Positions 1 through 20,604 of a DNA stretch of 64,000 nucleotides are shown here, piece by piece. Made by a program: the position numbers and the translations under genes. Positions within the stretch are counted from its first letter, which is position 1. The number at the start of each line of letters is the position of its first letter. The notes beneath the pieces are model-generated. The model made no database searches. It was given only the letters and a program-made list of their open reading frames with translations, and was not told where the DNA came from. Source of the DNA: Paramoeba atlantica (taxonomy: Eukaryota > Protista > Discosea); the NCBI GenBank assembly GCA_977017575.1, contig CDRNVI010000088.1, forward strand, positions 1 through 64,000. Direction: 5' to 3'.

Positions 1-182
1 TTTCCCTTTGTAGTGAGGCCGCCAGGTTGCGAGTTTTGTCGATAGCTGGAATCGAACCCAGAACCTGCAGGTTGTAAGACCCACCGTCTAACAACTACGC
101 CCGTACCGCACAACTACGCCCGCACCGCGCCAGTAATAATGCTCGCCAGTAATAATGTAAGTAATAACCGCCAGTAATAATG

Positions 183-260
183 TGATGAGCGGGTTTGAAC
201 TCGCTGTATGGGCACCATGTTCTTCAAACTTTGAATTCTTGCCACTCCGCCACCTCACTA
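183..260 (-). other. Degenerate tRNA-like module with Pol III A and B boxes (one per array unit; a second copy lies at ~985-1075)
   Basis: The minus strand reads TGGCGGAGTGG (A box, 252-242), then 39 nt, then GAGTTCAAACCC (B box, 202-191). It has a TTCAAAG anticodon-like loop. The acceptor stem pairs only 5/7. Confidence 0.6.
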
Positions 261-984
261 CTCAACTCAATACACAACTACGCTCTTCTTGGGTGTCTGG
301 TTGGTAAAGTGTTTTGGTTGCCGTGTTCCAGCGGTTGCTGTTGAAACGTGTGGCGGCCATGCGCTTTGGACTACAGCTTCGTCGTGGGAGATTCGTTCGA
401 ATTTTCAAGTCTCTTTAAGCCGGTGGATAATTGTCTGTATTTCACTTCTGTTGTTCCTCCTATCCTTGCTCATCTTAACGAACACTAGTAAAGAGGGTTT
501 CTTTTACAATGCAAAAACGCAAACTCACGTACAGTAGTTTTGAAGTGTTTTATTATAAATAATATTACTTGTAACCCTGTGTTTTTAACTTTAACACAAA
601 GAACATTCTTCCATACTCTTAAACAGCGATGAACTATCCGTCCGAACGTTCTCAATCCAAACCGAGACTCTCATCGCCCAAATCCAAAATCCAAATCATT
701 CCGGATTGCTCCGGATAGTCACTGGCAAGCCAGACCCTTCACAGACAGATTTGGAAGTTCCGAGGCCGACGTCCTCTACCAGTTTCCGCTTTTCCAAGGC
801 GGCACCAACGTGCTGTTGCCAACACGCTGCGTCGACGAATTGTACGTCAACACGGCCTACCCAAGAGGTGTAAGCCGGGTAAGGGAGCTGGTTCCCTGAG
901 GGGAGGGTCCGGGACGGTCCTCCGAGTACTGGGCCTAGTCGGTTATCAGCCCAGCCTCTTAGAGCGCGGCCGCCGGGAATATTG

Positions 985-1075
985 CGATGAACGGGTTTGA
1001 ACTCGCCGTCTGAGCACCATGTGCTTCAAACTTTGAATTCTTGCCACTCCGCCACCTCCGCCCACTCCGCCACCT
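985..1075 (-). other. Second tRNA-like A/B-box module of the unit, with a duplicated A box and an AGCAC-ATG-GTGCT variable-arm-like hairpin
   Basis: Direct-repeat homologue of 185-255. The B box is at 993-1004 and the A boxes at 1044-1054 and 1062-1072. Confidence 0.55.
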
Positions 1076-1231
1076 CCGCCCTGGTGCCGCCTTGGACAAG
1101 AGGAAACTGGTAGAGGACGTCGGCCTCGGAACTTCCGAATCTGTCTGTGAAGGGTCTGGCTTGCCAGCGACCATCCGGAGCAATCCGGAATGATTTGGAT
1201 GATGATGATGATGATTTTGGTCACCATCCCG

Positions 1232-1538
1232 GTAGCTACCCGGACGGGCGTCCAACCCCGTTGCATCGTGTAGGCTGTGTCTCAAGCCTTCTTTGCGTAA
1301 GCAGCTCGCATTTAGCGGCTGCGCTGGGGCCTGGTTCGGCGAGGCGGTTCCGGGTCGGTCCTCCAGGGGAGCGGGGTTGGGTGTGGGCCTTGAAGGCACT
1401 ACTGATCGCTTTCCCTTTGTAGTGAGGCCGCCAGGTTGCGAGTTTTGTCGATAGCTGGAATCGAACCCAGAACCTGCAGGTTGTAAGACCCACCGTCTAA
1501 CAACTACGCCCGTACCGCACAACTACGCCCGCACCGCG
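1232..1538 (-). mobile_element. 5' ~290 nt of the tRNA-like SINE (one per array unit)
   Basis: Reverse-complement near-identity to 17037-17325. It contains the B box GGTTCGATTCC, and the 19-nt head is tandemly duplicated. Confidence 0.8.
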
Positions 1539-2375
1539 CCAGTAATAATGCTCGCCAGTAATAATGTAAGTAATAACCGCCAGTAATAATGTGATGAGCG
1601 GGTTTGAACTCGCTGTATGGGCACCATGTTCTTCAAACTTTGAATTCTTGCCACTCCGCCACCTCACTACTCAACTCAATACACAACTACGCTCTTCTTG
1701 GGTGTCTGGTTGGTAAAGTGTTTTGGTTGCCGTGTTCCAGCGGTTGCTGTTGAAACGTGTGGCGGCCATGCGCTTTGGACTACAGCTTCGTCGTGGGAGA
1801 TTCGTTCGAATTTTCAAGTCTCTTTAAGCCGGTGGATAATTGTCTGTATTTCACTTCTGTTGTTCCTCCTATCCTTGCTCATCTTAACGAACACTAGTAA
1901 AGAGGGTTTCTTTTACAATGCAAAAACGCAAACTCACGTACAGTAGTTTTGAAGTGTTTTATTATAAATAATATTACTTGTAACCCTGTGTTTTTTAACT
2001 TTAACACAAAGAACATTCTTCCATACTCTTAAACAGCGATGAACTATCCGTCCGAACGTTCTCAATCCAAAACCGAGACTCTCATCGCCCAAATCCAAAA
2101 TCCAAATCATTCCGGATTGCTCCGGATAGTCACTGGCAAGCCAGACCCTTCACAGACAGATTTGGAAGTTCCGAGGCCGACGTCCTCTACCAGTTTCCGC
2201 TTTTCCAAGGCGGCACCAACGTGCTGTTGCCAACACGCTGCGTCGACGAATTGTACGTCAACACGGCCTACCCAAGAGGTGTAAGCCGGGTAAGGGAGCT
2301 GGTTCCCTGAGGGGAGGGTCCGGGACGGTCCTCCGAGTACTGGGCCTAGTCGGTTATCAGCCCAGCCTCTTAGAG

Positions 2376-2943
2376 TTTATAAAGATACAGTTTCTGTACC
2401 TTGTTGCCCTTCTTTTCTTTTCCCGGAAACGGGCATACATTTTCCTTTTAAATGCCCGTTTCCGGCTGACGGCTAGCAGGGACTGTCCCTCTTTGTCGTG
2501 GAAGTAGGGGACGTACTTCCGACTTTTCACCCCTCCCCGGCTCACTCCTTGAGTGAGTTTTTTTTCCCTCCCCGGCTTTCTTCTTCTCGCGCCTGTCTCT
2601 TCCCGGGAGCTATGCGCCATGGTGGCCTCCCTTGAGGACCACTGGGCGTGACTCTGCCTCGCATTATCGCGAGGCAGCGGTCGGTTGCAGTGCGCCCCTC
2701 CGGCTGCGTAAAGAGGTGGTGAGTTGCCTGGACCACCTCTACCGACTGGGACCGAGTCGGTTGCAGTACGCCCCTCCGGCTGCGTAAAGAGAGGGCGAGT
2801 TGCCTGGACCCCCTCTACCGACCGAGTCCGTGTCGAACCCCCTTTGGCGACATCCGTTGTGGGCGGATTATGTGCCGATGATATCGGCCGTCGCATTAAG
2901 AGGATTATCTCTGCGCCAAAGAGCGCATGATAAACAAACAAAG
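2376..2943 (+). mobile_element. 568-bp SL-headed, A-rich-tailed non-coding retro-insertion (copy 1)
   Basis: Present only in B units, between TAGAG and CG(C/A)GGCC of the empty A unit. It starts with ATAAAGATACAGTTTCTGTACCTTGTTG (2379-2406) and ends ATAAACAAACAAAG. Confidence 0.8.
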
Positions 2944-5767
2944 CGAGGCCGCCGGGAATATTGCGATGAACGGGTTTGAACTCGCCGTCTGAGCACCATG
3001 TGCTTCAAACTTTGAATTCTTGCCACTCCGCCACCTCCGCCCACTCCGCCACCTCCGCCCTGGTGCCGCCTTGGACAAGAGGAAACTGGTAGAGGACGTC
3101 GGCCTCGGAACTTCCGAATCTGTCTGTGAAGGGTCTGGCTTTCCAGCGACCATCCGGAGCAATCCGGAATGATTTGGATGATGATGATGATGATTTTGGT
3201 CACCATCCCGGTAGCTACCCGGACGGGCGTCCAACCCCGTTGCATCGTGTAGGCTGTGTCTCAAGCCTTCTTTGCGTAAGCAGCTCGCAATTTAGCGGCT
3301 GCGCTGGGGCCTGGTTCGGCGAGGCGGTTCCGGGTCGGTCCTCCAGGGGAGCGGGGTTGGGTGTGGGCCTTGAAGGCACTACTGATCGCTTTCCCTTTGT
3401 AGTGAGGCCGCCAGGTTGCGAGTTTTGTCGATAGCTGGAATCGAACCCAGAACCTGCAGGTTGTAAGACCCACCGTCTAACAACTACGCCCGTACCGCAC
3501 AACTACGCCCGCACCGCGCCAGTAATAATGCTCGCCAGTAATAATGTAAGTAATAACCGCCAGTAATAATGTGATGAGCGGGTTTGAACTCGCTGTATGG
3601 GCACCATGTTCTTCAAACTTTGAATTCTTGCCACTCCGCCACCTCACTACTCAACTCAATACACAACTACGCTCTTCTTGGGTGTCTGGTTGGTAAAGTG
3701 TTTTGGTTGCCGTGTTCCAGCGGTTGCTGTTGAAACGTGTGGCGGCCATGCGCTTTGGACTACAGCTTCGTCGTGGGAGATTCGTTCGAATTTTCAAGTC
3801 TCTTTAAGCCGGTGGATAATTGTCTGTATTTCACTTCTGTTGTTCCTCCTATCCTTGCTCATCTTAACGAACACTAGTAAAGAGGGTTTCTTTTACAATG
3901 CAAAAACGCAAACTCACGTACAGTAGTTTTGAAGTGTTTTATTATAAATAATATTACTTGTAACCCTGTGTTTTTTAACTTTAACACAAAGAACATTCTT
4001 CCATACTCTTAAACAGCGATGAACTATCCGTCCGAACGTTCTCAATCCAAAACCGAGACTCTCATCGCCCAAATTCAAAATCCAAATCATTCCGGATTGC
4101 TCCGGATAGTCACTGGCAAGCCAGACCCTTCACAGACAGATTTGGAAGTTCCGAGGCCGACGTCCTCTACCAGTTTCCGCTTTTCCAAGGCGGCACCAAC
4201 GTGCTGTTGCCAACACGCTGCGTCGACGAATTGTACGTCAACACGGCCTACCCAAGAGGTGTAAGCCGGGTAAGGGAGCTGGTTCCCTGAGGGGAGGGTC
4301 CGGGACGGTCCTCCGAGTACTGCGCCTAGTCGGTTATCAGCCCAGCCTCTTAGAGCGCGGCCGCCGGGAATATTGCGATGAACGGGTTTGAACTCGCCGT
4401 CTGAGCACCATGTGCTTCAAACTTTGAATTCTTGCCACTCCGCCACCTCCGCCCACTCCGCCACCTCCGCCCTGGTGCCGCCTTGGACAAGAGGAAACTG
4501 GTAGAGGACGTCGGCCTCGGAACTTCCGAATCTGTCTGTGAAGGGTCTGGCTTGCCAGCGACCATCCGGAGCAATCCGGAATGATTTGGATGATGATGAT
4601 GATGATTTTGGTCACCATCCCGGTAGCTACCCGGACGGGCGTCCAACCCCGTTGCATCGTGTAGGCTGTGTCTCAAGCCTTCTTTGCGTAAGCAGCTCGC
4701 AATTTAGCGGCTGCGCTGGGGCCTGGTTCGGCGAGGCGGTTCCGGGTCGGTCCTCCAGGGGAGCGGGGTTGGGTGTGGGCCTTGAAGGCACTACTGATCG
4801 CTTTCCCTTTGTAGTGAGGCCGCCAGGTTGCGAGTTTTGTCGATAGCTGGAATCGAACCCAGAACCTGCAGGTTGTAAGACCCACCGTCTAACAACTACG
4901 CCCGTACCGCACAACTACGCCCGCACCGCGCCAGTAATAATGCTCGCCAGTAATAATGTAAGTAATAACCGCCAGTAATAATGTGATGAGCGGGTTTGAA
5001 CTCGCTGTATGGGCACCATGTTCTTCAAACTTTGAATTCTTGCCACTCCGCCACCTCACTACTCAACTCAATACACAACTACGCTCTTCTTGGGTGTCTG
5101 GTTGGTAAAGTGTTTTGGTTGCCGTGTTCCAGCGGTTGCTGTTGAAACGTGTGGCGGCCATGCGCTTTGGACTACAGCTTCGTCGTGGGAGATTCGTTCG
5201 AATTTTCAAGTCTCTTTAAGCCGGTGGATAATTGTCTGTATTTCACTTCTGTTGTTCCTCCTATCCTTGCTCATCTTAACGAACACTAGTAAAGAGGGTT
5301 TCTTTTACAATGCAAAAACGCAAACTCACGTACAGTAGTTTTGAAGTGTTTTATTATAAATAATATTACTTGTAACCCTGTGTTTTTTAACTTTAACACA
5401 AAGAACATTCTTCCATACTCTTAAACAGCGATGAACTATCCGTCCGAACGTTCTCAATCCAAAACCGAGACTCTCATCGCCCAAATCCAAAATCCAAATC
5501 ATTCCGGATTGCTCCGGATAGTCACTGGCAAGCCAGACCCTTCACAGACAGATTTGGAAGTTCCGAGGCCGACGTCCTCTACCAGTTTCCGCTTTTCCAA
5601 GGCGGCACCAACGTGCTGTTGCCAACACGCTGCGTCGACGAATTGTACGTCAACACGGCCTACCCAAGAGGTGTAAGCCGGGTAAGGGAGCTGGTTCCCT
5701 GAGGGGAGGGTCCGGGACGGTCCTCCGAGTACTGGGCCTAGTCGGTTATCAGCCCAGCCTCTTAGAG

Positions 5768-6335
5768 TTTATAAAGATACAGTTTCTGTACCTTGTTGCC
5801 CTTCTTTTCTTTTCCCGGAAACGGGCATACATTTTCCTTTTAAATGCCCGTTTCCGGCTGACGGCTAGCAGGGACTGTCCCTCTTTGTCGTGGAAGTAGG
5901 GGACGTACTTCCGACTTTTCACCCCTCCCCGGCTCACTCCTTGAGTGAGTTTTTTTTCCCTCCCCGGCTTTCTTCTTCTCGCGCCTGTCTCTTCCCGGGA
6001 GCTATGCGCCATGGTGGCCTCCCTTGAGGACCACTGGGCGTGACTCTGCCTCGCATTATCGCGAGGCAGCGGTCGGTTGCAGTGCGCCCCTCCGGCTGCG
6101 TAAAGAGGTGGTGAGTTGCCTGGACCACCTCTACCGACTGGGACCGAGTCGGTTGCAGTACGCCCCTCCGGCTGCGTAAAGAGAGGGCGAGTTGCCTGGA
6201 CCCCCTCTACCGACCGAGTCCGTGTCGAACCCCCTTTGGCGACATCCGTTGTGGGCGGATTATGTGCCGATGATATCGGCCGTCGCATTAAGAGGATTAT
6301 CTCTGCGCCAAAGAGCGCATGATAAACAAACAAAG
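5768..6335 (+). mobile_element. 568-bp SL-headed insertion (copy 2)
   Basis: Near-identical to 2376-2943, offset by 3392 bp. Confidence 0.8.
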
Positions 6336-9159
6336 CGAGGCCGCCGGGAATATTGCGATGAACGGGTTTGAACTCGCCGTCTGAGCACCATGTGCTTCAA
6401 ACTTTGAATTCTTGCCACTCCGCCACCTCCGCCCACTCCGCCACCTCCGCCCTGGTGCCGCCTTGGACAAGAGGAAACTGGTAGAGGACGTCGGCCTCGG
6501 AACTTCCGAATCTGTCTGTGAAGGGTCTGGCTTTCCAGCGACCATCCGGAGCAATCCGGAATGATTTGGATGATGATGATGATGATTTTGGTCACCATCC
6601 CGGTAGCTACCCGGACGGGCGTCCAACCCCGTTGCATCGTGTAGGCTGTGTCTCAAGCCTTCTTTGCGTAAGCAGCTCGCAATTTAGCGGCTGCGCTGGG
6701 GCCTGGTTCGGCGAGGCGGTTCCGGGTCGGTCCTCCAGGGGAGCGGGGTTGGGTGTGGGCCTTGAAGGCACTACTGATCGCTTTCCCTTTGTAGTGAGGC
6801 CGCCAGGTTGCGAGTTTTGTCGATAGCTGGAATCGAACCCAGAACCTGCAGGTTGTAAGACCCACCGTCTAACAACTACGCCCGTACCGCACAACTACGC
6901 CCGCACCGCGCCAGTAATAATGCTCGCCAGTAATAATGTAAGTAATAACCGCCAGTAATAATGTGATGAGCGGGTTTGAACTCGCTGTATGGGCACCATG
7001 TTCTTCAAACTTTGAATTCTTGCCACTCCGCCACCTCACTACTCAACTCAATACACAACTACGCTCTTCTTGGGTGTCTGGTTGGTAAAGTGTTTTGGTT
7101 GCCGTGTTCCAGCGGTTGCTGTTGAAACGTGTGGCGGCCATGCGCTTTGGACTACAGCTTCGTCGTGGGAGATTCGTTCGAATTTTCAAGTCTCTTTAAG
7201 CCGGTGGATAATTGTCTGTATTTCACTTCTGTTGTTCCTCCTATCCTTGCTCATCTTAACGAACACTAGTAAAGAGGGTTTCTTTTACAATGCAAAAACG
7301 CAAACTCACGTACAGTAGTTTTGAAGTGTTTTATTATAAATAATATTACTTGTAACCCTGTGTTTTTTAACTTTAACACAAAGAACATTCTTCCATACTC
7401 TTAAACAGCGATGAACTATCCGTCCGAACGTTCTCAATCCAAAACCGAGACTCTCATCGCCCAAATTCAAAATCCAAATCATTCCGGATTGCTCCGGATA
7501 GTCACTGGCAAGCCAGACCCTTCACAGACAGATTTGGAAGTTCCGAGGCCGACGTCCTCTACCAGTTTCCGCTTTTCCAAGGCGGCACCAACGTGCTGTT
7601 GCCAACACGCTGCGTCGACGAATTGTACGTCAACACGGCCTACCCAAGAGGTGTAAGCCGGGTAAGGGAGCTGGTTCCCTGAGGGGAGGGTCCGGGACGG
7701 TCCTCCGAGTACTGCGCCTAGTCGGTTATCAGCCCAGCCTCTTAGAGCGCGGCCGCCGGGAATATTGCGATGAACGGGTTTGAACTCGCCGTCTGAGCAC
7801 CATGTGCTTCAAACTTTGAATTCTTGCCACTCCGCCACCTCCGCCCACTCCGCCACCTCCGCCCTGGTGCCGCCTTGGACAAGAGGAAACTGGTAGAGGA
7901 CGTCGGCCTCGGAACTTCCGAATCTGTCTGTGAAGGGTCTGGCTTGCCAGCGACCATCCGGAGCAATCCGGAATGATTTGGATGATGATGATGATGATTT
8001 TGGTCACCATCCCGGTAGCTACCCGGACGGGCGTCCAACCCCGTTGCATCGTGTAGGCTGTGTCTCAAGCCTTCTTTGCGTAAGCAGCTCGCAATTTAGC
8101 GGCTGCGCTGGGGCCTGGTTCGGCGAGGCGGTTCCGGGTCGGTCCTCCAGGGGAGCGGGGTTGGGTGTGGGCCTTGAAGGCACTACTGATCGCTTTCCCT
8201 TTGTAGTGAGGCCGCCAGGTTGCGAGTTTTGTCGATAGCTGGAATCGAACCCAGAACCTGCAGGTTGTAAGACCCACCGTCTAACAACTACGCCCGTACC
8301 GCACAACTACGCCCGCACCGCGCCAGTAATAATGCTCGCCAGTAATAATGTAAGTAATAACCGCCAGTAATAATGTGATGAGCGGGTTTGAACTCGCTGT
8401 ATGGGCACCATGTTCTTCAAACTTTGAATTCTTGCCACTCCGCCACCTCACTACTCAACTCAATACACAACTACGCTCTTCTTGGGTGTCTGGTTGGTAA
8501 AGTGTTTTGGTTGCCGTGTTCCAGCGGTTGCTGTTGAAACGTGTGGCGGCCATGCGCTTTGGACTACAGCTTCGTCGTGGGAGATTCGTTCGAATTTTCA
8601 AGTCTCTTTAAGCCGGTGGATAATTGTCTGTATTTTACTTCTGTTGTTCCTCCTATCCTTGCTCATCTTAACGAACACTAGTAAAGAGGGTTTCTTTTAC
8701 AATGCAAAAACGCAAACTCACGTACAGTAGTTTTGAAGTGTTTTATTATAAATAATATTACTTGTAACCCTGTGTTTTTTAACTTTAACACAAAGAACAT
8801 TCTTCCATACTCTTAAACAGCGATGAACTATCCGTCCGAACGTTCTCAATCCAAAACCGAGACTCTCATCGCCCAAATCCAAAATCCAAATCATTCCGGA
8901 TTGCTCCGGATAGTCACTGGCAAGCCAGACCCTTCACAGACAGATTTGGAAGTTCCGAGGCCGACGTCCTCTACCAGTTTCCGCTTTTCCAAGGCGGCAC
9001 CAACGTGCTGTTGCCAACACGCTGCGTCGACGAATTGTACGTCAACACGGCCTACCCAAGAGGTGTAAGCCGGGTAAGGGAGCTGGTTCCCTGAGGGGAG
9101 GGTCCGGGACGGTCCTCCGAGTACTGGGCCTAGTCGGTTATCAGCCCAGCCTCTTAGAG

Positions 9160-9727
9160 TTTATAAAGATACAGTTTCTGTACGTTGTTGCCCTTCTTTT
9201 CTTTTCCCGGAAACGGGCATACATTTTCCTTTTAAATGCCCGTTTCCGGCTGACGGCTAGCAGGGACTGTCCCTCTTTGTCGTGGAAGTAGGGGACGTAC
9301 TTCCGACTTTTCACCCCTCCCCGGCTCACTCCTTGAGTGAGTTTTTTTTCCCTCCCCGGCTTTCTTCTTCTCGCGCCTGTCTCTTCCCGGGAGCTATGCG
9401 CCATGGTGGCCTCCCTTGAGGACCACTGGGCGTGACTCTGCCTCGCATTATCGCGAGGCAGCGGTCGGTTGCAGTGCGCCCCTCCGGCTGCGTAAAGAGG
9501 TGGTGAGTTGCCTGGACCACCTCTACCGACTGGGACCGAGTCGGTTGCAGTACGCCCCTCCGGCTGCGTAAAGAGAGGGCGAGTTGCCTGGACCCCCTCT
9601 ACCGACCGAGTCCGTGTCGAACCCCCTTTGGCGACATCCGTTGTGGGCGGATTATGTGCCGATGATATCGGCCGTCGCATTAAGAGGATTATCTCTGCGC
9701 CAAAGAGCGCATGATAAACAAACAAAG
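9160..9727 (+). mobile_element. 568-bp SL-headed insertion (copy 3)
   Basis: Near-identical to 2376-2943, with one substitution in the SL part (CTGTACGTTGTTG). Confidence 0.8.
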
Positions 9728-10630
9728 CGAGGCCGCCGGGAATATTGCGATGAACGGGTTTGAACTCGCCGTCTGAGCACCATGTGCTTCAAACTTTGAA
9801 TTCTTGCCACTCCGCCACCTCCGCCCACTCCGCCACCTCCGCCCTGGTGCCGCCTTGGACAAGAGGAAACTGGTAGAGGACGTCGGCCTCGGAACTTCCG
9901 AATCTGTCTGTGAAGGGTCTGGCTTGCCAGCGACCATCCGGAGCAATCCGGAATGATTTGGATGATGATGATGATGATTTTGGTCACCATCCCGGTAGCT
10001 ACCCGGACGGGCGTCCAACCCCGTTGCATCGTGTAGGCTGTGTCTCAAGCCTTCTTTGCGTAAGCAGCTCGCAATTTAGCGGCTGCGCTGGGGCCTGGTT
10101 CGGCGAGGCGGTTCCGGGTCGGTCCTCCAGGGGAGCGGGGTTGGGTGTGGGCCTTGAAGGCACTACTGATCGCTTTCCCTTTGTAGTGAGGCCGCCAGGT
10201 TGCGAGTTTTGTCGATAGCTGGAATCGAACCCAGAACCTGCAGGTTGTAAGACCCACCGTCTAACAACTACGCCCGTACCGCACAACTACGCCCGCACCG
10301 CGCCAGTAATAATGCTCGCCAGTAATAATGTAAGTAATAACCGCCAGTAATAATGTGATGAGCGGGTTTGAACTCGCTGTATGGGCACCATGTTCTTCAA
10401 ACTTTGAATTCTTGCCACTCCGCCACCTCACTACTCAACTCAATACACAACTACGCTCTTCTTGGGTGTCTGGTTGGTAAAGTGTTTTGGTTGCCGTGTT
10501 CCAGCGGTTGCTGTTGAAACGTGTGGCGGCCATGCGCTTTGGACTACAGCTTCGTCGTGGGAGATTCGTTCGAATTTTCAAGTCTCTTTAAGCCGGTGGA
10601 TAATTGTCTGTATTTCACTTCTGTTGTTCC

Positions 10631-11041
10631 TCCTATCCTATCCTATAAGACCGATTTGAATCGGTTAAGAACACATCCGTTTTTGTCGTCGCTTCGACGT
10701 CTTTCACTCAGGTGAATTCGCCCTTTCGTGCCCCTTTTTCGCTTAACCGGGCATGCAACTTTGTTTTTTTGGCATCAAATTCTTCAGCACTATTTCCTCA
10801 AATTCCTCAACACTCTTTCAAGAGAATCCACCCCGGCATCCACAGGTGGCGAGGTACCCTTTTTGGAGAGAGAATAACTTTCCACAATCTTGAAGTAATC
10901 CTGTATTTTCCCTAATGGCTTAGGTATTTGGCCACAGTGTTTCCGAGGACGATTCATGGTTTGAAAATCAAAACTCTGTGCAAAGCAAAACGAAACTCAA
11001 TTATCTTCTTTTTTTCATGCACTTGTAGTGCAGCGATTTGT
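10631..11041 (-). mobile_element. 3' fragment of a second (ATAGG)n-tailed retroelement that truncates the array
   Basis: (TCCTA)3 at 10631-10645 on the plus strand joins the array at its own TCCTATCCT. A hairpin at 10650-10665 is homologous to the LINE 3' hairpin. Confidence 0.6.
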
Positions 11042-11093
11042 CTCTACCTTCCTTATCCTATCCTATTAGGCTGACTTGCGTCGGCTGAAAGTA

Positions 11094-14000
11094 CTACTGC
11101 TTCGTTTTTCGTGAAAACGATTTTCTCTTAGGTGAGTCTTCTACCTTGCGACCCACAATCTTGTGTAACTCCCTTGACCCTTTACGCTCTTCGCTCGCTT
11201 CCTTAACACATTCCGCTTCCTGGAGTGATTTTCGGTCTTTTGATGACCCTGTTCCGGTAGATGGTAAAAGCGAGGAACCCTTTTTGGGTGCACGTTCCTC
11301 TGCAGAAGTAGTGTATCCTCGTTTGTTAGATGCAATGGGTATTGTGCCGTCGTTTGCCGGGGTCTTTCGTGTCGGGCGAACGGAAAGACGCAAGTTTTTA
11401 GATTCACGTCGTTGAGAGTCCCGAGCACTCAATGTCTTCATCCTCTTTGTCAACTGAGAAGAAAGAGGTTTCCGTGAAGCAGCGAGAGCCAAAGCGTCAG
11501 CCTTGTCATTGTACGCATTTCCGTTGTGGGCCTTCACCTTACAAACGTAGATTTCAATATTATTGCTTTGAAGAATACGAATCTTTCGATCTAAAAATTC
11601 AAGAAGCTCACCATTCGCCACCTTCTTGTATCCTACTACTCGTTGCCGCATCCTTACGTGATGGAAAAAATTCCACACGTAAAAGGAATCAGTGTGCACC
11701 AACACAACTTCGGATCCCTCAGGTATTCTTTCAAGTGACTCTTTGAAGGATTCTGCCTCAGCTTGTTCTGCTGAGTCAACGTCCAGCCTCAAAGAAGCAT
11801 AATCATCATTCACCCACTTGCGCCTGATCACGATACCCGCCCCCCCTCTGCATTCATTTGTCGCCTTGATATAGCGTACCGAACCATCGGTGTACATGTG
11901 AACTTCCTTTTCCCGAACTGGAAAAATTTCTGAGTTTTCTTCTACAAATTGCAACTCACTAATTGATTCGTGTTTCAGAGCATGGTTATACTTACTCTTC
12001 CATCGCGAAGAGGTGATCCTCTCATAGTCGACCAACGGTTCCAGAGAAAGCCTGAGAGAGTCACATAACTTTTGCCAGTGTTGTCGGTCTTGAGAAAAAA
12101 CGAGGGCTTCTTCAACCGTTATCCCGAGATCATGAAAACATTCCTCGCTAGGAAACATTCGCCTAGCGTTCTCTCTACTTTTCCACTGAAGCAATTCTCG
12201 AAACACTGTTGAGTGACGAATCATGTGACCCACCACCTTTTCCCTGCTTACACGATGGATGGTGTTGAAGCGAGGTTTTCCACGATAGAGAGATTCTAGG
12301 GGATAACAATGACCGAATTCGTCTAGTTTGACATGATTGCAGGCAAATCGTCTCATCATGTTGATTTCAACCTCAGTTTTCCTGACCATAGCATTCGAGA
12401 TTGGTAGAGATGAAATTCCAAAAGTAAGAACAGGATATACCAAACAATCGAACAGGCGGAGCTTAGTGGAGGCGTCAAGGGGTGAGTTCCAAATTCCTTT
12501 GAGACGTCGAAAAGCGGCCCAGGTCAATGCCAATCTATCCTTAACTGGGGAGGAGGCACCGGATTCTTGAAGCTGCCCCAGATACCTGTATTTGTCAACA
12601 TATGGAATTTTGCCCAGGTAGGCCGTTCTGAGCTCCTTTTGTCCACCTGGAACTCTACCAAACCCCATCCATGCTGTTTTCGTCTTGCCTATGGCGATTT
12701 GCAAATTCGCTCTTTGAGACTCCTGAGCCGTGAGGTCAATCATGCGGGAGATCTCACCTTTAGTTGATGCCAATAGAGCGATATCATCAGCATAGTTGAT
12801 GTCTTGTAGCCGTACCTCTTGTAACCCTCTGCTCTTTGTCCCTTGGCTCCTAAGAAGAACCCCAAGGGGCCTGCCGTCCAATGCTCGGTGTAGAATGCGG
12901 TCAACGACAAGAATGAAGAGATAAGGTGCCAAAACGTCCCCTTGAAGAATACCAGTTGTGATTTGAAATGAATTCGTATTTCCATAGGGGGTCCGAACAA
13001 CACCATGAAGACCTCTGTATATAGACATTATGGTTCGCAGCATTGCAGGGCCAACGTGGAAAGCCTGAAGCGCAGCTGAAAAGAGACAGAGGGAAATGCT
13101 TTCGCAAAGTCCAGAAAAGCGACCACCAACCCAGACTTGTCTCGACATGCCCTGGTCTTCACCTCGTTAAGGAGTATTCTCGCGCCGGATGTAGAGCGTT
13201 CTGGGAGAAACCCATACTGACTGTCCCGCAGAATTGGTTCTATGGTCGGTCGAATTCGTTGCAATATCATGCAGTTCATCAACTTAACGATGCTATTAAC
13301 TAAGCATATTGGGCGCCAATTTGCTATTTGAGATAAGCCGCCCTTCTTCGGGATAGGGACTTGAACTACAGTCTTCCAGCATTCAGGGGCAACCCCCGTA
13401 CCTCATTAATAATATCAAGCATCGCTAGCTTAAGTCCACTATGCTCCGAAATAATGCTTATCACTTCAGCCGGTATTGCATCAATTCCTGGAGCTTTATT
13501 TCGTGCAAGTTTAGAAATTCCATGAATAAGCTCCTCTTCCGTAAATGCTCCATCTTGTATTGGAGTTGATGGTTTAACAACATCGTCGAACTGAATTTCA
13601 GAATCCCCTAAGTCGTTGCTACCCATCCTAGAGAAGAAATCTCGGACTACATTCAGAGTCTCTTTGGTAGATGAAGTGTCAGTGCAAAGCTTTGTCCTAT
13701 AAATGCCGCATAGTCTCCGCAAAGTTTGCCATGGATTCGATCTATTTGCTCTAAGGCCTGATTCTATCGCCTCACATTCGCGTGCAATTTGATCCTCGAC
13801 TTGCTTTCCGTGCACTTTCAAAACTTCCTTGAAATGCTCAGGTTGACGACTCTGTAGAAAAATCTGTCGGAAAGTAGAAGGGATACCAATATCCTGTGGC
13901 TCGCTGTCTGTCGTCGCGGCCTCTATTTTACTGCATTCCGAGGAATTGGCTTCTTTTTTTGATGATTCGTCGTGAAATGCCGGAGACTTCGTATTTCGGA

Positions 14001-15552
14001 GAATCTCTTTGCAAGTATGAACCATAACACCAGAGAGGTTTTCCCATGTAGGTATCGATTCCTTTTGTGTTTCTTCCCAGACTTTCTGTTTAAACTTCTC
14101 TCTGTTCTTTTCATCTCTTAGTTTAACCCATGGAACCCATTCAGACCCTGTTGGACGACCCACTCGCCATTTGATATCAATGTCTGCCAAAACAATGCAA
14201 TGCGTTGTAGGCACTGGCGCCTTAAGGACCTTATGCATGCGAATGCTGGACGAAAAACGGCCCCCTACAAGTATGTGGTCAAGTTGTCTTCTAACTCGTG
14301 AACCTTTCCTCTCCGCACCTTTCTCTGAAGAATAACTATTCATTTCTTTATTTTGAGTTGCTTGGCGTTTCTTTTCTGTATCCGATCGTATTTTTCTTTC
14401 GTGTATAGAAGTTGCTCGGTCTCCCCGAAGACAATTCGTGGATCTACAAGGAAGTTCGCATGTCCATTTCCGCCTGCTTGGGCAGAGCAAGTGGGCAGAT
14501 TTGCATCCTATGGCGCACTTAAGACCCTTAAGTTGTGCAGCAGCTGGGGGATCCATTTTTCGATTTACTATGTAGGTTAAAGGTGAATTAAAATCTCCCA
14601 AAACTAAAAGTGGCCTGCGCCTGAGCTTCGACTCAACTTCACTGCAAACTCTTTCCACATCGCCCAGAAAAGCCGCATGGGCGGCTTCAGAGGAGCCCCT
14701 AATGGGAGCATAGGCATTTAAAAGAGCGCCCTTCCCCTCATTGAGATTGATTCTTCTTACCTTCCGCACCCGCGAAAGAACCCGACGACTAACAATTCCC
14801 ATGCCATTATATGAATCCCCCACGTTCGCCGCCTGTAGGTATATGTGAAACGTGCATCCTAGGTTCTCAACTTTTCTGTAGAGCACGCCGTCCTCACAAG
14901 TATCATCAGAAAACTTAAACCTGGTCTCCTGGAGACACAGTAAGTCAACCCCCTTTTCTACCATAAAGGAGAGAATTTCACAAAAGCGTGTGCATCGTCG
15001 GATAGAAAACTCGTCTTCCCCCTCAAGTTTGAGCGTTGTCACGTTAAGTGTTCCTACGGTAGTACTTTCCTTCACAGCGGAACCTCTCGGGTTCTCCGAT
15101 TCTCGTTGGACACGCTTGCCACGCAATGTCCAGGGCTTGCGCGGGCGATGGGAAGCAATTCTTCGTTTCGCTTTTTTCGGGTTACAAACCTCCACTGCGC
15201 AAAGAACTACACTAGTGGAAGAAAAGGGGGGGAACGGCAGCGTTGCGTGAGGACGTTCTTCGTACCTCACACGAAATAAACCCGACAAAGACTCAGACTT
15301 AAGCCTTGCCAGGCATACATCTACAACCCTCCCGCTCCAAAGCGAGAGTTTACTACTAGTTTCGTGTCTCCACACGACACGGATAAAAGCACCCAATCGA
15401 GCGAACTTAAAAATTGCCCTCACCGCCCGCTGGCGGAGTTTAGCAAACTCTCTTCGCTCCGGAGAACGGAAGATAACTCCCCGAACACGCTTGGTTCGGC
15501 AGAAGGTTTCAAGAAGCTCTGTCCCCCCTGCCGCGCCGGAAGCATCCGCCAT
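11094..15552 (-). pseudogene. LINE polyprotein split by two frameshifts (~13395 and ~13085)
   Basis: APE motifs: TLNV, LCLQET, AYAP, LGDFNS, LDHILV. RT motifs: KAPGID, PIPKKG..NWRPICL, SQYGF, LDFAKAF, GILQGDVLAPYLF, YADD, YRYLG. RNase H motifs: YTDGS, AEQAEA, TDS, VKAHNGNAYNDKADALA. Confidence 0.9.
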
Positions 15553-15578
15553 TTTTTTATAAACGAATTTATAAAAAA

Positions 15579-15606
15579 CAACAAGGTACAGAAACTGTAT
15601 CTTTAT
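15579..15606 (-). other. Spliced-leader exon relic (3' 28 nt) 26 nt upstream of the LINE ATG
   Basis: The minus strand reads ATAAAGATACAGTTTCTGTACCTTGTTG. The core GATACAGTTTCTGTAC and the terminal TTG match the kinetoplastid SL exon. No GT intron follows. Confidence 0.85.
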
Positions 15607-16198
15607 CGTTAAAGATACAGTTTTATTTACTTTATTTTAAAGTACTTTACTTTCTATTTACTTTTTTATTTACTTTATTTTAAAGATACAGTATCTTTAT
15701 CGTTAAAGATACTCTTTATCGTTAAAGATACTCTACCTTCCTTAACCGCATGCGGCTGGTGGGTCAAGTGAGCGTTTGCCGTCTTTCGCGGAGTTGGCGC
15801 CCCAGGCGCAGAGAGCTCTGTGTTCATGCGCAGTTCCAGGTATAAGGGTACGTAATCACAATATTACGGTTCCGGGGGCAAGCCGGATGCAGAGAGCTGC
15901 GGCGGAGCCGAGGTACAGAGAGGTGGTCGCCCTACAGGCCCAAGGAGGCGGGCGGAGTACAAGACTCAAGGGCAGCCGCCTTGACGCATAGAGTAAGATG
16001 AAACTGAGGGCTCTGCAGCGTCAACCTTTAGAGTCTCAGCCAAAGACCCTCATTGCCCTCCAAGACAACAACCCTAAAAATCCAAAAACACCGGCTATTA
16101 AAGCCAGTTGAAAAAATGAAAACAACCTTTGCTTACGTTGTGCGAGTGTAGTTGGTGTAGCGGTGGGGGGGTAGCGGTGCGAGTGTAGTTGTTAGACG

Positions 16199-17688: not shown

Positions 17689-20604
17689 TTGAAAGATCCT
17701 CCATTTGTCGGGTTTTACATTTCCAAACACTGTGAAGTTCGACACGAAAAGAGTTTTGCAGGCACGCGCTTCAAACGGCATATAATATCATTTGTTTCCT
17801 CAGGAGCAGAAACAGTGGCACAGGTTCTTCCTGTAACGGAGCAACGTGTGTTCGTTACGTTTGTTGGTGAAAACATCAAGGAAAAAGCTTTGATCAACCC
17901 TTCCTTTAGAGCATATTTTGAAGTACGCCCACACGTTGTGAAGAAATGGTTAATATTTCTGAAGAAAAATAATGTGTTTTATCATGATATCATCATATCC
18001 GACGTGAACATTGATAATCTGGCCTCTTCATGCCATGGTATTTTGAATTTAGCTTCGACTGTAAACAACCCCGCGTCGGTAGCCGCTTCCTTTCTCGCCC
18101 ATAACCAGGCGCAATCAAATACCGAAGCCGACGATGAAGATGTTTTGCTACTTAACAGTCACCGCGTAGAAGATCCGGGGCAAGCTTTGGTAGATGGTGT
18201 TACAGGTTTGCTTGAGAAAAAAGAACACGTTTCTTCTTGCAGAAGCCGAATAAAAATTTATGCTAATGCAGCCAATGAGTTTTCGGAAAACCATCTAATT
18301 CTTGGGATGGGGTATCCTGATCTTTTCCCCGTTCTTTCAAATGATTCAGCTAACTTACCTAAAACGCCCTTGACACCATCAGGTGGACTGAGGCATCTTC
18401 TTCTTCAATCTGATTCAAGATGGTGCAGAAGTAGCAATTTCGGTTACTTTCATTTTGACCAAATCAGACGACATTCACTTGCTAGAAATGTGAAGGCGAA
18501 ACCAAGCATGTGGGAAAGAGCAAGATCTTTATTGAAGCGAAAGAATTTATTGGAAAATTTGCGCGCAGCCTTAAAAGATCCACTTGACACGGAAGGTAAT
18601 AAACTCTTACATGAGTCAATGCAGGTTCTCCACATAATAACTCGGAACATTCATTTTTCAGATGCTTCACGCAATGCGTGTTTTAACGACATGGTTGCGA
18701 TGCATTCATTCATGGGATACGGCGCCCTGTATATTACAATATCTCCGTGCGACCCGGATATGAAACTAACATTGAAATATTTAGATAAATGCAGCACAGG
18801 CGTTACGGAAAGCATGCTTATTAAAAATCCTGATCTGAGAGTTCAAGAAGTTAAGAACCACCCTGCATATTGCGCAAACACGTTCAATTTAATGATCCAC
18901 GCTGTGATCAAGCAATTGTTTGGAATTCAACTTTCCAGTTCGTACAAAAAAAGTGGACAGCAACAATCGTTAGATACCTCTTTTAAAACCGAGACGCCAA
19001 ACGGTATTTTCAATTTTTCTAAAGGTCTTTTTGGTGTCGTGGAAACTCAAGGTCGCGGGAGCTTGCATATGCACATGCTTCTTTGGGGTATTCCAGTCTC
19101 AGATTATCTGTCTGAAAATCTTTCTAGTAAAGGTAAAAGAGAACAAATTTGCAATCTTGCATCGGATTACATGACGGTTAGTGTGCCTCGTGAGGGTTTT
19201 GAGCACGACGTATTAAACAAAGTACGGGTGGGTCTTCAGAATTGTCCCAGCTTCGAAGACACTTCAGGAATGCTTTTGAGAGAGTTCTTAGTTGCTTCCA
19301 CGGTCCAAAATCATATCTGCACAGAAATGTGTTTTAAAAATCGTCAGTTTTTGCCCCTAAAGTGCAGGTACGCATACCCACGCCAGCCGTTTCAAGGCGG
19401 CAACTTGTATCTGTTAGAATGCGCGGATGGTGACTTTAAAAATATCAAAGCTTCCCTGCTAACCGACGCCAACTTGCCAAGTCTGCCAAATATATCCAAA
19501 ACATTCTTTAATTATCCTTCATTAGACCTCCGACCTATTGCATACTTTCCAAAAAGAAGCGAGAAAGATGTAAACATTGCCGAATATAACAGCCTGTTGT
19601 CCTGCGCACTCGGTTGCAATACAAATGTCGTACTTCTTGCTTCGCCGTGCACTGCAGCTATTACTATTTTTTACTTGTTCAAATACTTGTCAAAGAATCT
19701 TCTGGACGTGAGTGGTTGTTTAGGAGTAATCCATACAGCGAAAGAGAAAGAAAAATATGAAGGAAAGGGGGGGGACACCAACGCTGCCGATATTCTTATG
19801 TGCAATAGGCTAGGGAATGCTCAACTTGGAATACAAGAAGTATCATCACAGCTTGCGATGTATTGCTGTTTGGGGTATAGTGCGGAAGAACGCAGCCATT
19901 TGACCCCATACTTGAATGTTCAACAAGCGATTCAGCTAATGACGCGCGGTGCTAAAGAAAAACCAGTCAATGATAACGTCGAGCCAGAGGAATCCGATAA
20001 TGAGGATTACGAAGAAGTGGCCTTCGAAGTATTTCTAAATGACGACGGCTCCCCTGAATTATGTAGCAAAGCAACGGATTACTACTATAGAGGGCCTGAA
20101 CTTGCATTCTTGAATTTATATATCTATGCAGCAATAATTGTTCGAGTTCGTGCAGCAAGGGTTAAAACTAAAAGAACACGCGGAAGGCATAAAAACGCTT
20201 GTTTTTCGTTTATGAAGAATCATCCCTTAGCTACCAGTTTTGTTCAACAAATTCGAAGCAAGTTTGTTTTACCTTCTCCTGGATATACATGTATACCTCA
20301 TTGGTCACAACATTCGTACTCCATCGAAAATTCAACCTCTGGATTTTTACGACGTGCAAAATATCACGCAAAGTATTTTTCTGCACTGTTCTGTCCCTTT
20401 TCGGAAGACGTCGAAATCGGTTATGACATAGAAAGTTGGAAAACGTATTTGAAAACACTTAAAAAATATTCGCAACCTGATGAAGCATTGGCTGGTCTTC
20501 CATCGGAGGTTTACGCAACGCTTTTGAAAATTATTAATAATATGCGAATTGGGGTACAAGACAGTGCTTTTGAAGAGCCCAGAAATCTAATAAATCGATT
20601 TTAA
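17689..20604 (+). pseudogene. Helitron Rep (HUH endonuclease) segment
   Basis: Helitron-type motifs YFEVRPHVVKKWLIFLK, YPDLFP, HLLLQSD, ETQGRGSLHMH, VQNH, CRYAYP, EYN..L..ALGCNTNV, YLFKY. Confidence 0.88.

Follow-up and report, generated by a model that had tools for sequence, protein, structure and literature searches.

The 64,000-bp window analysed here (positions 1 to 64,000 on the forward strand of contig CDRNVI010000088.1 of Paramoeba atlantica) starts with a tandem array (1-10640), in which a 1412-bp A unit alternates with a 1980-bp B unit to form a higher-order repeat of 3392 bp. The B unit corresponds to an A unit plus 568 bp. This additional sequence had initially been annotated as a discrete insert without a credible ORF, and it is present as such at three positions (Table 1). 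Since the three inserts are spaced at 3392 bp, they represent one insertion, which was later amplified with the A (1412 bp) plus B (1980 bp) array unit.

The limits of the insertion are known to the base. The A units still display the empty target site that had been noted together with its AG overlap, for example between positions 964 and 965 and, in a second A unit, between 4355 and 4356. The empty site (964/965) reads cttagag|cgcggcc, and the filled site reads cttagag, followed by TTT, the element ending in ACAAACAAAG, and cgaggcc; only the AG at the junction is ambiguous. Filled and empty forms are both found among the contigs of three DNA runs, in which the skip of 568 bases was also seen.

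Table 1. Features of the putative SINE-like retroposon and of its target in the window (SL, spliced leader).
Feature	Position	Strand	Remarks
SINE-like retroposon (putative), copy 1	2376..2943	+	Filler TTT, SL head, body, 3' stem-loop, short A-rich tail; empty site in A units
SINE-like retroposon (putative), copy 2	5768..6335	+	100% identical to copy 1; amplified with the 3392-bp higher-order repeat
SINE-like retroposon (putative), copy 3	9160..9727	+	One substitution in the SL head (CGTTG)
Empty target site in A unit	958..974	+	Insertion point between 964 and 965
Filler, T x3, at the 5' junction	2376..2378	+	Seen neither in the empty site nor in other copies
Head, SL exon nt 11-38 (28 nt)	2379..2406	+	Identical to the exon in about 40 SL RNA genes
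Polypyrimidine stretch right behind the SL	2407..2421	+	Preceded in the main family by a 14-nt GT..AG-bounded segment, which copy 1 lacks
14-bp hairpin (CCGGAAACGGGCAT arm and complement)	2422..2465	+	One compensatory change, A-U to C-G, in a subfamily
Anti-SL, internal segment complementary to the SL head	2466..2486	+	Consensus fold
Internal tandem duplication, period 76, 1.9 copies	2680..2822	+	
3' terminal stem-loop, conserved frame	2908..2930	+	Stem 2912-2916 with 2923-2927; common to R2-like LINEs
Short A-rich tail	2928..2943	+	TGATAAAC, then AAAC-like units; last AG ambiguous with target

Several other repeats were found in the window. Within the A unit there are internal inverted repeats and, on the minus strand (about 20-110), a degenerate stretch that resembles a tRNA but is not called by ARAGORN, and pieces related to the A unit adjoin a truncated SL RNA retrocopy at two other loci (L083 and L084). 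Two LINE 3' ends on the minus strand, each composed of a hairpin and an (ATAGG)n tail, are located at 10631-10700 and 11040-11090; one of them interrupts the tandem array at a tail-like site. The LINE on the minus strand at about 11040-15607 was considered as a partner of the insert and rejected, as it encodes APE, RT and RNase H domains, ends in an (ATAGG)n tail and has a longer SL head; its ends do not match those of the insert. Directly upstream of this LINE, at its head region (15560-15740), several incomplete and in part palindromic repeats of the 5' portion of the SL are located, and another locus (L029) has a long perfect palindrome through its SL head; these SL palindromes look like products of snap-back or template switching. 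A Helitron-type element with a 971-aa ORF (Helitron_like_N and DUF6570 domains) is located at 17689-20604 on the plus strand.

In this genome of kinetoplastid type, the 568-base insert belongs to a young, dispersed and non-coding family of about 50 to 150 copies with 86-100% identity. A genome search with the 568 bp, in which 40 of 501 candidates were scored, gave at least 48 matches on many contigs, mostly over the full length and within this identity range, so that the element is not limited to the array. The flanks of about 24 copies are unrelated, except for a few segmental duplicates. The exact 5' junction of the main type has 50 matches in the genome, and the 3' hairpin (within 2 mismatches) has 146, sister subfamilies included. 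Nearly all copies start at ATAAAGAT, and all have a common 3' end made up of one hairpin, TGATAAAC and a few A-rich bases, namely 0-2 AAAC-like units, which agrees with the (AAAC)n-type tail of the initial annotation.

No conserved ORF was found across the copies, an antisense open stretch shifting in frame and length from copy to copy, and a Pfam search of the element gave no match. ARAGORN and Rfam returned nothing for the element, including any Pol III-type head, and Rfam searches at gathering thresholds on the whole window, and at E values up to 10 on a typical copy, revealed no SL RNA, ribozyme, tRNA or snRNA. As in SINEs, the copies are short, non-coding, numerous and dispersed, with the same discrete ends, and their 3' end is common to an autonomous LINE of the same genome, as supported by compensatory changes and a LINE on contig C20 (see below). 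A Pol III gene head (tRNA, 7SL or 5S) with internal promoter is lacking, and SL nt 11-38 are found in its stead; the proposal of a SINE-like family headed by the SL exon is thus borne out.

The target site duplications that had been anticipated at dispersed copies are essentially absent: the best match between 5' and 3' flanks has a mean length of 3.0 nt, versus 2.0 nt in the control, with a single exception of 11 bp. No common target sequence was shared by the flanks at the DNA level, and the insertions are not located at SL-like sites. The upstream flanks of three loci (L035, L045 and L056) display tandem duplications of 9-11 nt of target right before the head, which recall the imprecise 5' junctions of R2-type elements.

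The head was traced to the SL RNA genes. A 20-mer taken from it occurs 877 times in the 45.7-Mb genome, the control with the reversed pattern giving 0 occurrences, and some 40 of these occurrences belong to SL RNA genes organised in tandem arrays (contigs C97, C107, C11, C74 and C3). In these genes AACTTTAACG and the 28 nt of the head are followed by GTATGAGAAGC.., with GTATGAG directly behind the exon; the initial annotation had required that the real SL exon end in this way, and it does so in about 40 genes. By analogy with other kinetoplastid leaders, which served to place its start, the SL exon would be about 38 nt long. Among the runs listed as containing the element none is recorded as RNA. 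One possible RNA run (X7) contained a single matching contig, abundant and mRNA-like with the SL sequence at its end, and the match covers only the SL and 12 nt of this mRNA. The initial annotation had also equated the head with that of the LINE in the window. The 28 nt are indeed identical to those at 15570-15597 on the minus strand, but the head of the LINE reaches further, to about SL nt 3.

A targeting of SL genes by the element was rejected. The target of the insert is a tandem-repeat unit without SL, which differs from a CRE/SLACS-type site, and the SL genes are intact; the 7.3-kb SL RNA repeat units of contig C74 (103500-122500) do hold a LINE, but this LINE is of APE type and is located in the spacer, about 370 nt behind an exon that is free of insertions. 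The spacer LINE has a target overlap of about 12-22 bp, and of the SL its 5' end retains no more than the final 8 nt. A tandem array of another SL-containing unit, with SL heads 5093 bp apart and repeated sequence on both sides, was found on contig C1 (9752-25049; L001-L004).

The position at which the heads start separates two classes. The intact 28-mer is preceded by a base other than G at 79 sites (T 40, A 20, C 19) and by G at 512 sites, most of which continue into the SL. The latter class includes SL genes and retro-pseudogenes of unspliced SL RNA, as well as other retrocopies, which number several hundred and in many cases lie behind A runs. While other SL-bearing retrocopies in the genome reach SL nt 3-5, heads with a start at nt 11 are those of the R2-like LINEs and of their short passenger elements. 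At L079-L084 (contigs C87, C83, C6, C24 and C11) there are solitary retro-pseudogenes of unspliced SL RNA, containing exon and intron; they lack the upstream region of the gene and start at SL nt 3-5.

About 85-90% of the family copies are without SL nt 1-10. Among the copies with the SL|GTAC junction that have longer heads, two read TT and then CTTTAACG.., two contain the whole SL with a G at nt 4, about three have the extension TAACG, and about four have ACG; long heads are located, among other sites, at C31:16604 and C56:215897. The rare heads that reach SL nt 1-3 imply that the template RNA can carry the complete leader, nt 11 being the preferred end point. Both whole-SL heads (C19:444031-444077 and C43:577315-577361) have A at nt 22 and, in place of T, a G at nt 4. 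Should they stem from independent insertions, these shared changes would indicate that heads can be inherited, and the change at nt 4 could also result from copying across a modified cap base. A snap-back model for the start at nt 11 was discarded, as it predicts T, and not A, before TAAAG.

The sequence behind the head differs between the window copy and most of its relatives. In the family consensus GTACATTTTGCTAG is located between the SL and CCC, after which the sequence continues as CCCTTCC.., and in a sister subfamily GTACATTTTCCCTTTAG takes this position. Nested among the main-family copies, the window copy is 96.5% identical to that family apart from a gap of 14 nt, and the 14 nt that it lacks begin with GT and end with AG. 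The SL is joined straight to CCCTTCC at seven loci, the window copy and six others at C4:27509, C9:732619, C26:333938, C56:328467, C81:53505 and C91:10671, and another short family on contig C51 has the same direct SL|CCCTTCC arrangement. That CCC rather than an intron GT follows the SL, as had been pointed out initially, therefore holds for the window copy, but since most copies of the family have GTAC behind the SL, the SL|CCC junction is seen as derived.

In the main family CTAG immediately precedes CCC, and the pyrimidine-rich SL relic is located a short way upstream of this internal AG. A gap that extends from the exon end to just past the AG is the expected product of SL trans-splicing onto that AG, which favours a trans-spliced intermediate, and in the window type the 3' end of the SL exon is joined to the sequence behind the AG, as in a retrocopy of a trans-spliced RNA. 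In the R2-like LINEs and in several short families, too, the head stops precisely where the exon does. Moreover, the head is identical across lineages that differ by 14-35% elsewhere, which points either to repeated re-acquisition from the cellular SL or to strong selection. In a DNA copy of the main type the head ends in TG, so that canonical splicing cannot restore the SL|GTAC junction of such a copy.

The initial interpretation of the element as a retrocopy of a trans-spliced RNA is consequently supported by the exon-precise junction, the loss of a 14-nt GT..AG segment and the rare heads reaching nt 1-3, but the SL-less source locus with a polypyrimidine-AG acceptor, for which a search had been suggested, was not found in the assembly. 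The assembly contains no SL-less source with AG before GTACATTTT, and no copy in the genome has a base other than T before GGTACATTTTGCTAGCCCTT. The sole candidate for an acceptor-type sequence is a 17-nt match on the minus strand of contig C194 (40377-40410), composed of AG and the first 15 nt of the main-family sequence behind the SL, after which it diverges; this match is near chance level. A master element driven by an SL promoter was likewise rejected, as no copy carries the upstream sequence of an SL gene before a full head joined to GTACATT.

All eight hairpins named in the initial annotation are present in the sequence, and the fold of the element beats 100 of 100 shuffles (z = -5.8 for the window copy and -4.9 for a typical copy), a score to which the internal 76-bp duplication (2680-2822) may contribute in part. 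The hairpins exist, but the chain that they were proposed to form gains little from covariation: in the family alignment double changes affect 5 of 162 pairs, and this measure is nearly uninformative because the family is young and its copies are 95% alike. The duplex between the SL head and the anti-SL segment (2466-2486) has an energy of -20.1 kcal/mol, a value matched in the main family by 0.4% of shuffles and in the sister family by 1.2%, and it has no significance in the R2-like LINEs. On the alignments compared, the predicted 3' stem-loop is the sole structure with solid comparative support. In a comparison of seven ends representing four stem variants, no stem position of any end is unpaired, three of the five pairs are changed on both sides, and the covariation score was reached by none of 500 shuffles.

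The LINEs that share this end are located elsewhere in the genome. In two of them, at C30:207549-212392 and on C51, a CCHC knuckle and an RPD..E endonuclease motif come after the encoded RT. Among solved proteins the best relatives of these LINEs are those of R2, and their best database relatives are unnamed or named R2, with no SLACS-named protein among the best 120. Each of the two LINEs has its start at SL nt 11, and its 3' end is composed of ATCTCTG, a 5-bp stem, a loop, the complementary stem inside an invariant CATGA, and a short A-rich tail; the 3' end of the element displays the same frame of ATCTCTG, stem, loop, stem and CATGA. Homology between the body of the element and the LINEs is limited to the head, one block of 17 nt and the terminal hairpin. 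At both loci a short element follows, its A11 directly adjoining the LINE tail, and the LINEs themselves are only 62-65% alike. This LINE-then-SINE arrangement fits end-to-end template jumping, a known property of the R2 reverse transcriptase, or repeated tandem insertion. Judged by its sequence, a locus on contig C20 looks like a candidate autonomous partner: within 4.07 kb it contains, in line on one strand, a head of the nt-11 type, an RT with an open frame of 1158 aa and a hairpin that is identical to that of the sister subfamily. A Pfam analysis of ten ORFs located behind full-length SL heads did not sort these into APE and restriction-like types.

Based on the ends common to the element and the R2-like LINEs, from which mobilisation in trans is inferred, the insert is most probably a non-autonomous, non-coding SINE-like retroposon mobilised by R2-like LINEs with a restriction-like endonuclease. 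The LINE protein would recognise the 3' stem-loop, and the RNA would be copied at the nicked target by target-primed reverse transcription. The head would derive from SL trans-splicing of read-through Pol II transcripts, in which case the element would need a splice acceptor only, and no promoter of its own. The window copy may have arisen from a main-family RNA whose internal CTAG served as the acceptor for an SL, the old head and the 14 nt being lost in the process. Copying would mostly end at SL nt 11 and rarely at nt 1-3, and the end at nt 11 may reflect a stop or processing specific to the machinery, or priming of the second strand from a cap-proximal RNA remnant.

More tentatively, and with less confidence than is placed in the mobilisation by R2-like LINEs, the family might exemplify a promoterless class of retroposons with the splice acceptor as its sole 5' signal. 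Such elements would be transcribed by read-through in polycistronic units, capped with the SL and recopied by an R2-like machinery ending at nt 11, perhaps with a cap-proximal remnant of about 10 nt that primes the second strand; the cut position of CRE/SLACS elements is possibly linked to this end point.

Among the alternatives, the head could be a relic of a target site, left by SL-gene-specific ancestors resembling CRE, SLACS and CZAR, in which a duplicated piece of target was fixed, inherited through DNA and kept by selection. Aligned with the T. brucei SL, the start of the head falls on the position that we take to be homologous to the insertion site of the CRE clade. This site is located between nt 11 and 12 of a 39-nt SL, with 28 exon nt downstream (PMC5814959, PMC12278014). 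The restriction-like endonuclease of the partner LINEs, the GTA behind the exon of the main family, which equals the first three intron bases, and the failure to find an SL-less master in the assembly are also consistent with such an origin. We nevertheless regard it as unlikely, as some copies extend to SL nt 1-3, the LINEs and the other short families have no intron bases behind the head, the SL genes examined are all uninterrupted at nt 10/11, the insertions are not at SL-like sites, and the named relatives of the RT are of R2 type, no SLACS-named protein being among the best 120.

As a second alternative, the fixed 5' end at A11 could be due to ribozyme self-cleavage or to a promoter inside the head region, as is the case in R2 and L1Tc (Pr77), with the head then inherited instead of re-acquired. 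HDV-like ribozymes are used by R2 and L1Tc; about 80 heads have a sharp 5' end, in front of which T is in excess, suggesting a true template end, and in this SINE-like family the head pairs with an internal segment. On the other hand, this pairing is without significance in the LINEs, the helix begins 4 nt past the putative cut, unlike an HDV-type P1, and longer heads occur, so that we consider this explanation quite improbable; the absence of any ribozyme family at E values up to 10 adds a weak negative, such ribozymes being poorly conserved. Least credible by far is a mobile SL RNA gene or SL RNA retrocopy (exon plus intron), maybe still donating leaders: most copies have GT behind the exon and true retro-pseudogenes of unspliced SL RNA occur in the genome, but the full exon, conserved intron and upstream promoter region of an SL RNA gene are not found in the element, which bears no likeness to the SL RNA intron past GTA, lacks nt 1-10 and the upstream gene sequence, has no Rfam match and, in the window copy, is without any GT.

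As SINEs are classed by the origin of their head, a head formed by the SL exon would represent a further type. If the head was acquired by trans-splicing, the family would illustrate how a promoterless retroposon can spread in organisms that are nearly devoid of gene-specific promoters, and it would constitute a DNA record of a trans-spliced non-coding RNA. The sharp boundary at nt 11, as opposed to nt 3-5 in the other retrocopies, provides a handle on how R2-like copying is completed at a hyper-modified cap, and is relevant to whether the family might be connected with CRE/SLACS, the elements of trypanosomes that are specific to SL genes.

The literature searched contained no description of an SL-headed LINE/SINE system and no paper with this SL sequence. 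The known groups of kinetoplastid retroposons are CRE, ingi, VIPER and TATE, and in Hydra transposon transcripts are trans-spliced. SINE/LINE pairs of the stringent type share a 3' stem-loop, as in UnaSINE1/UnaL2 of the eel. The present family resembles such pairs in being short, non-coding, young, dispersed and multi-copy, with discrete ends and a 3' stem-loop common with a LINE. It differs from them by its SL-exon head, which replaces a tRNA, 7SL, 5S or snRNA head, by the lack of a Pol III promoter, and by the absence of target duplication, which would be due to the restriction-like endonuclease of its partner. R2 SIDEs, the short internally deleted elements of R2, are likewise non-autonomous passengers of an R2-type LINE that keep 5' and 3' terminal signals. 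In contrast to R2 SIDEs, the body here is not colinear with the 5' and 3' parts of a parent LINE and is no deletion derivative of one (17-nt block only), the insertions are not rDNA-specific, and no ribozyme was detected.

Among kinetoplastid elements, the pairs NARTc/L1Tc and RIME/ingi (Pr77 head) also combine non-autonomous and autonomous members with a common 5' signature, but they are of APE type, with target duplications of 12 bp and a 77-nt promoter/ribozyme head unrelated to the SL. CRE, SLACS and CZAR of trypanosomatids are LINEs with a restriction-like endonuclease that are tied to the SL, and the start of the head is homologous to their site; they insert into SL RNA genes, whereas the elements described here carry a piece of the SL, land elsewhere and leave the SL genes intact. 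Finally, retrogenes of dinoflagellates carry DNA-encoded SL relics (PMC5585692, PMC6050394, PMC12014239). In both cases the mark of an RNA intermediate is a leader that has become the 5' end of a DNA retrocopy, but, apart from the differences in organism and leader, the dinoflagellate retrogenes are retrocopies of mRNAs, whereas the family in P. atlantica is non-coding and presumably self-propagating with the help of a LINE partner.
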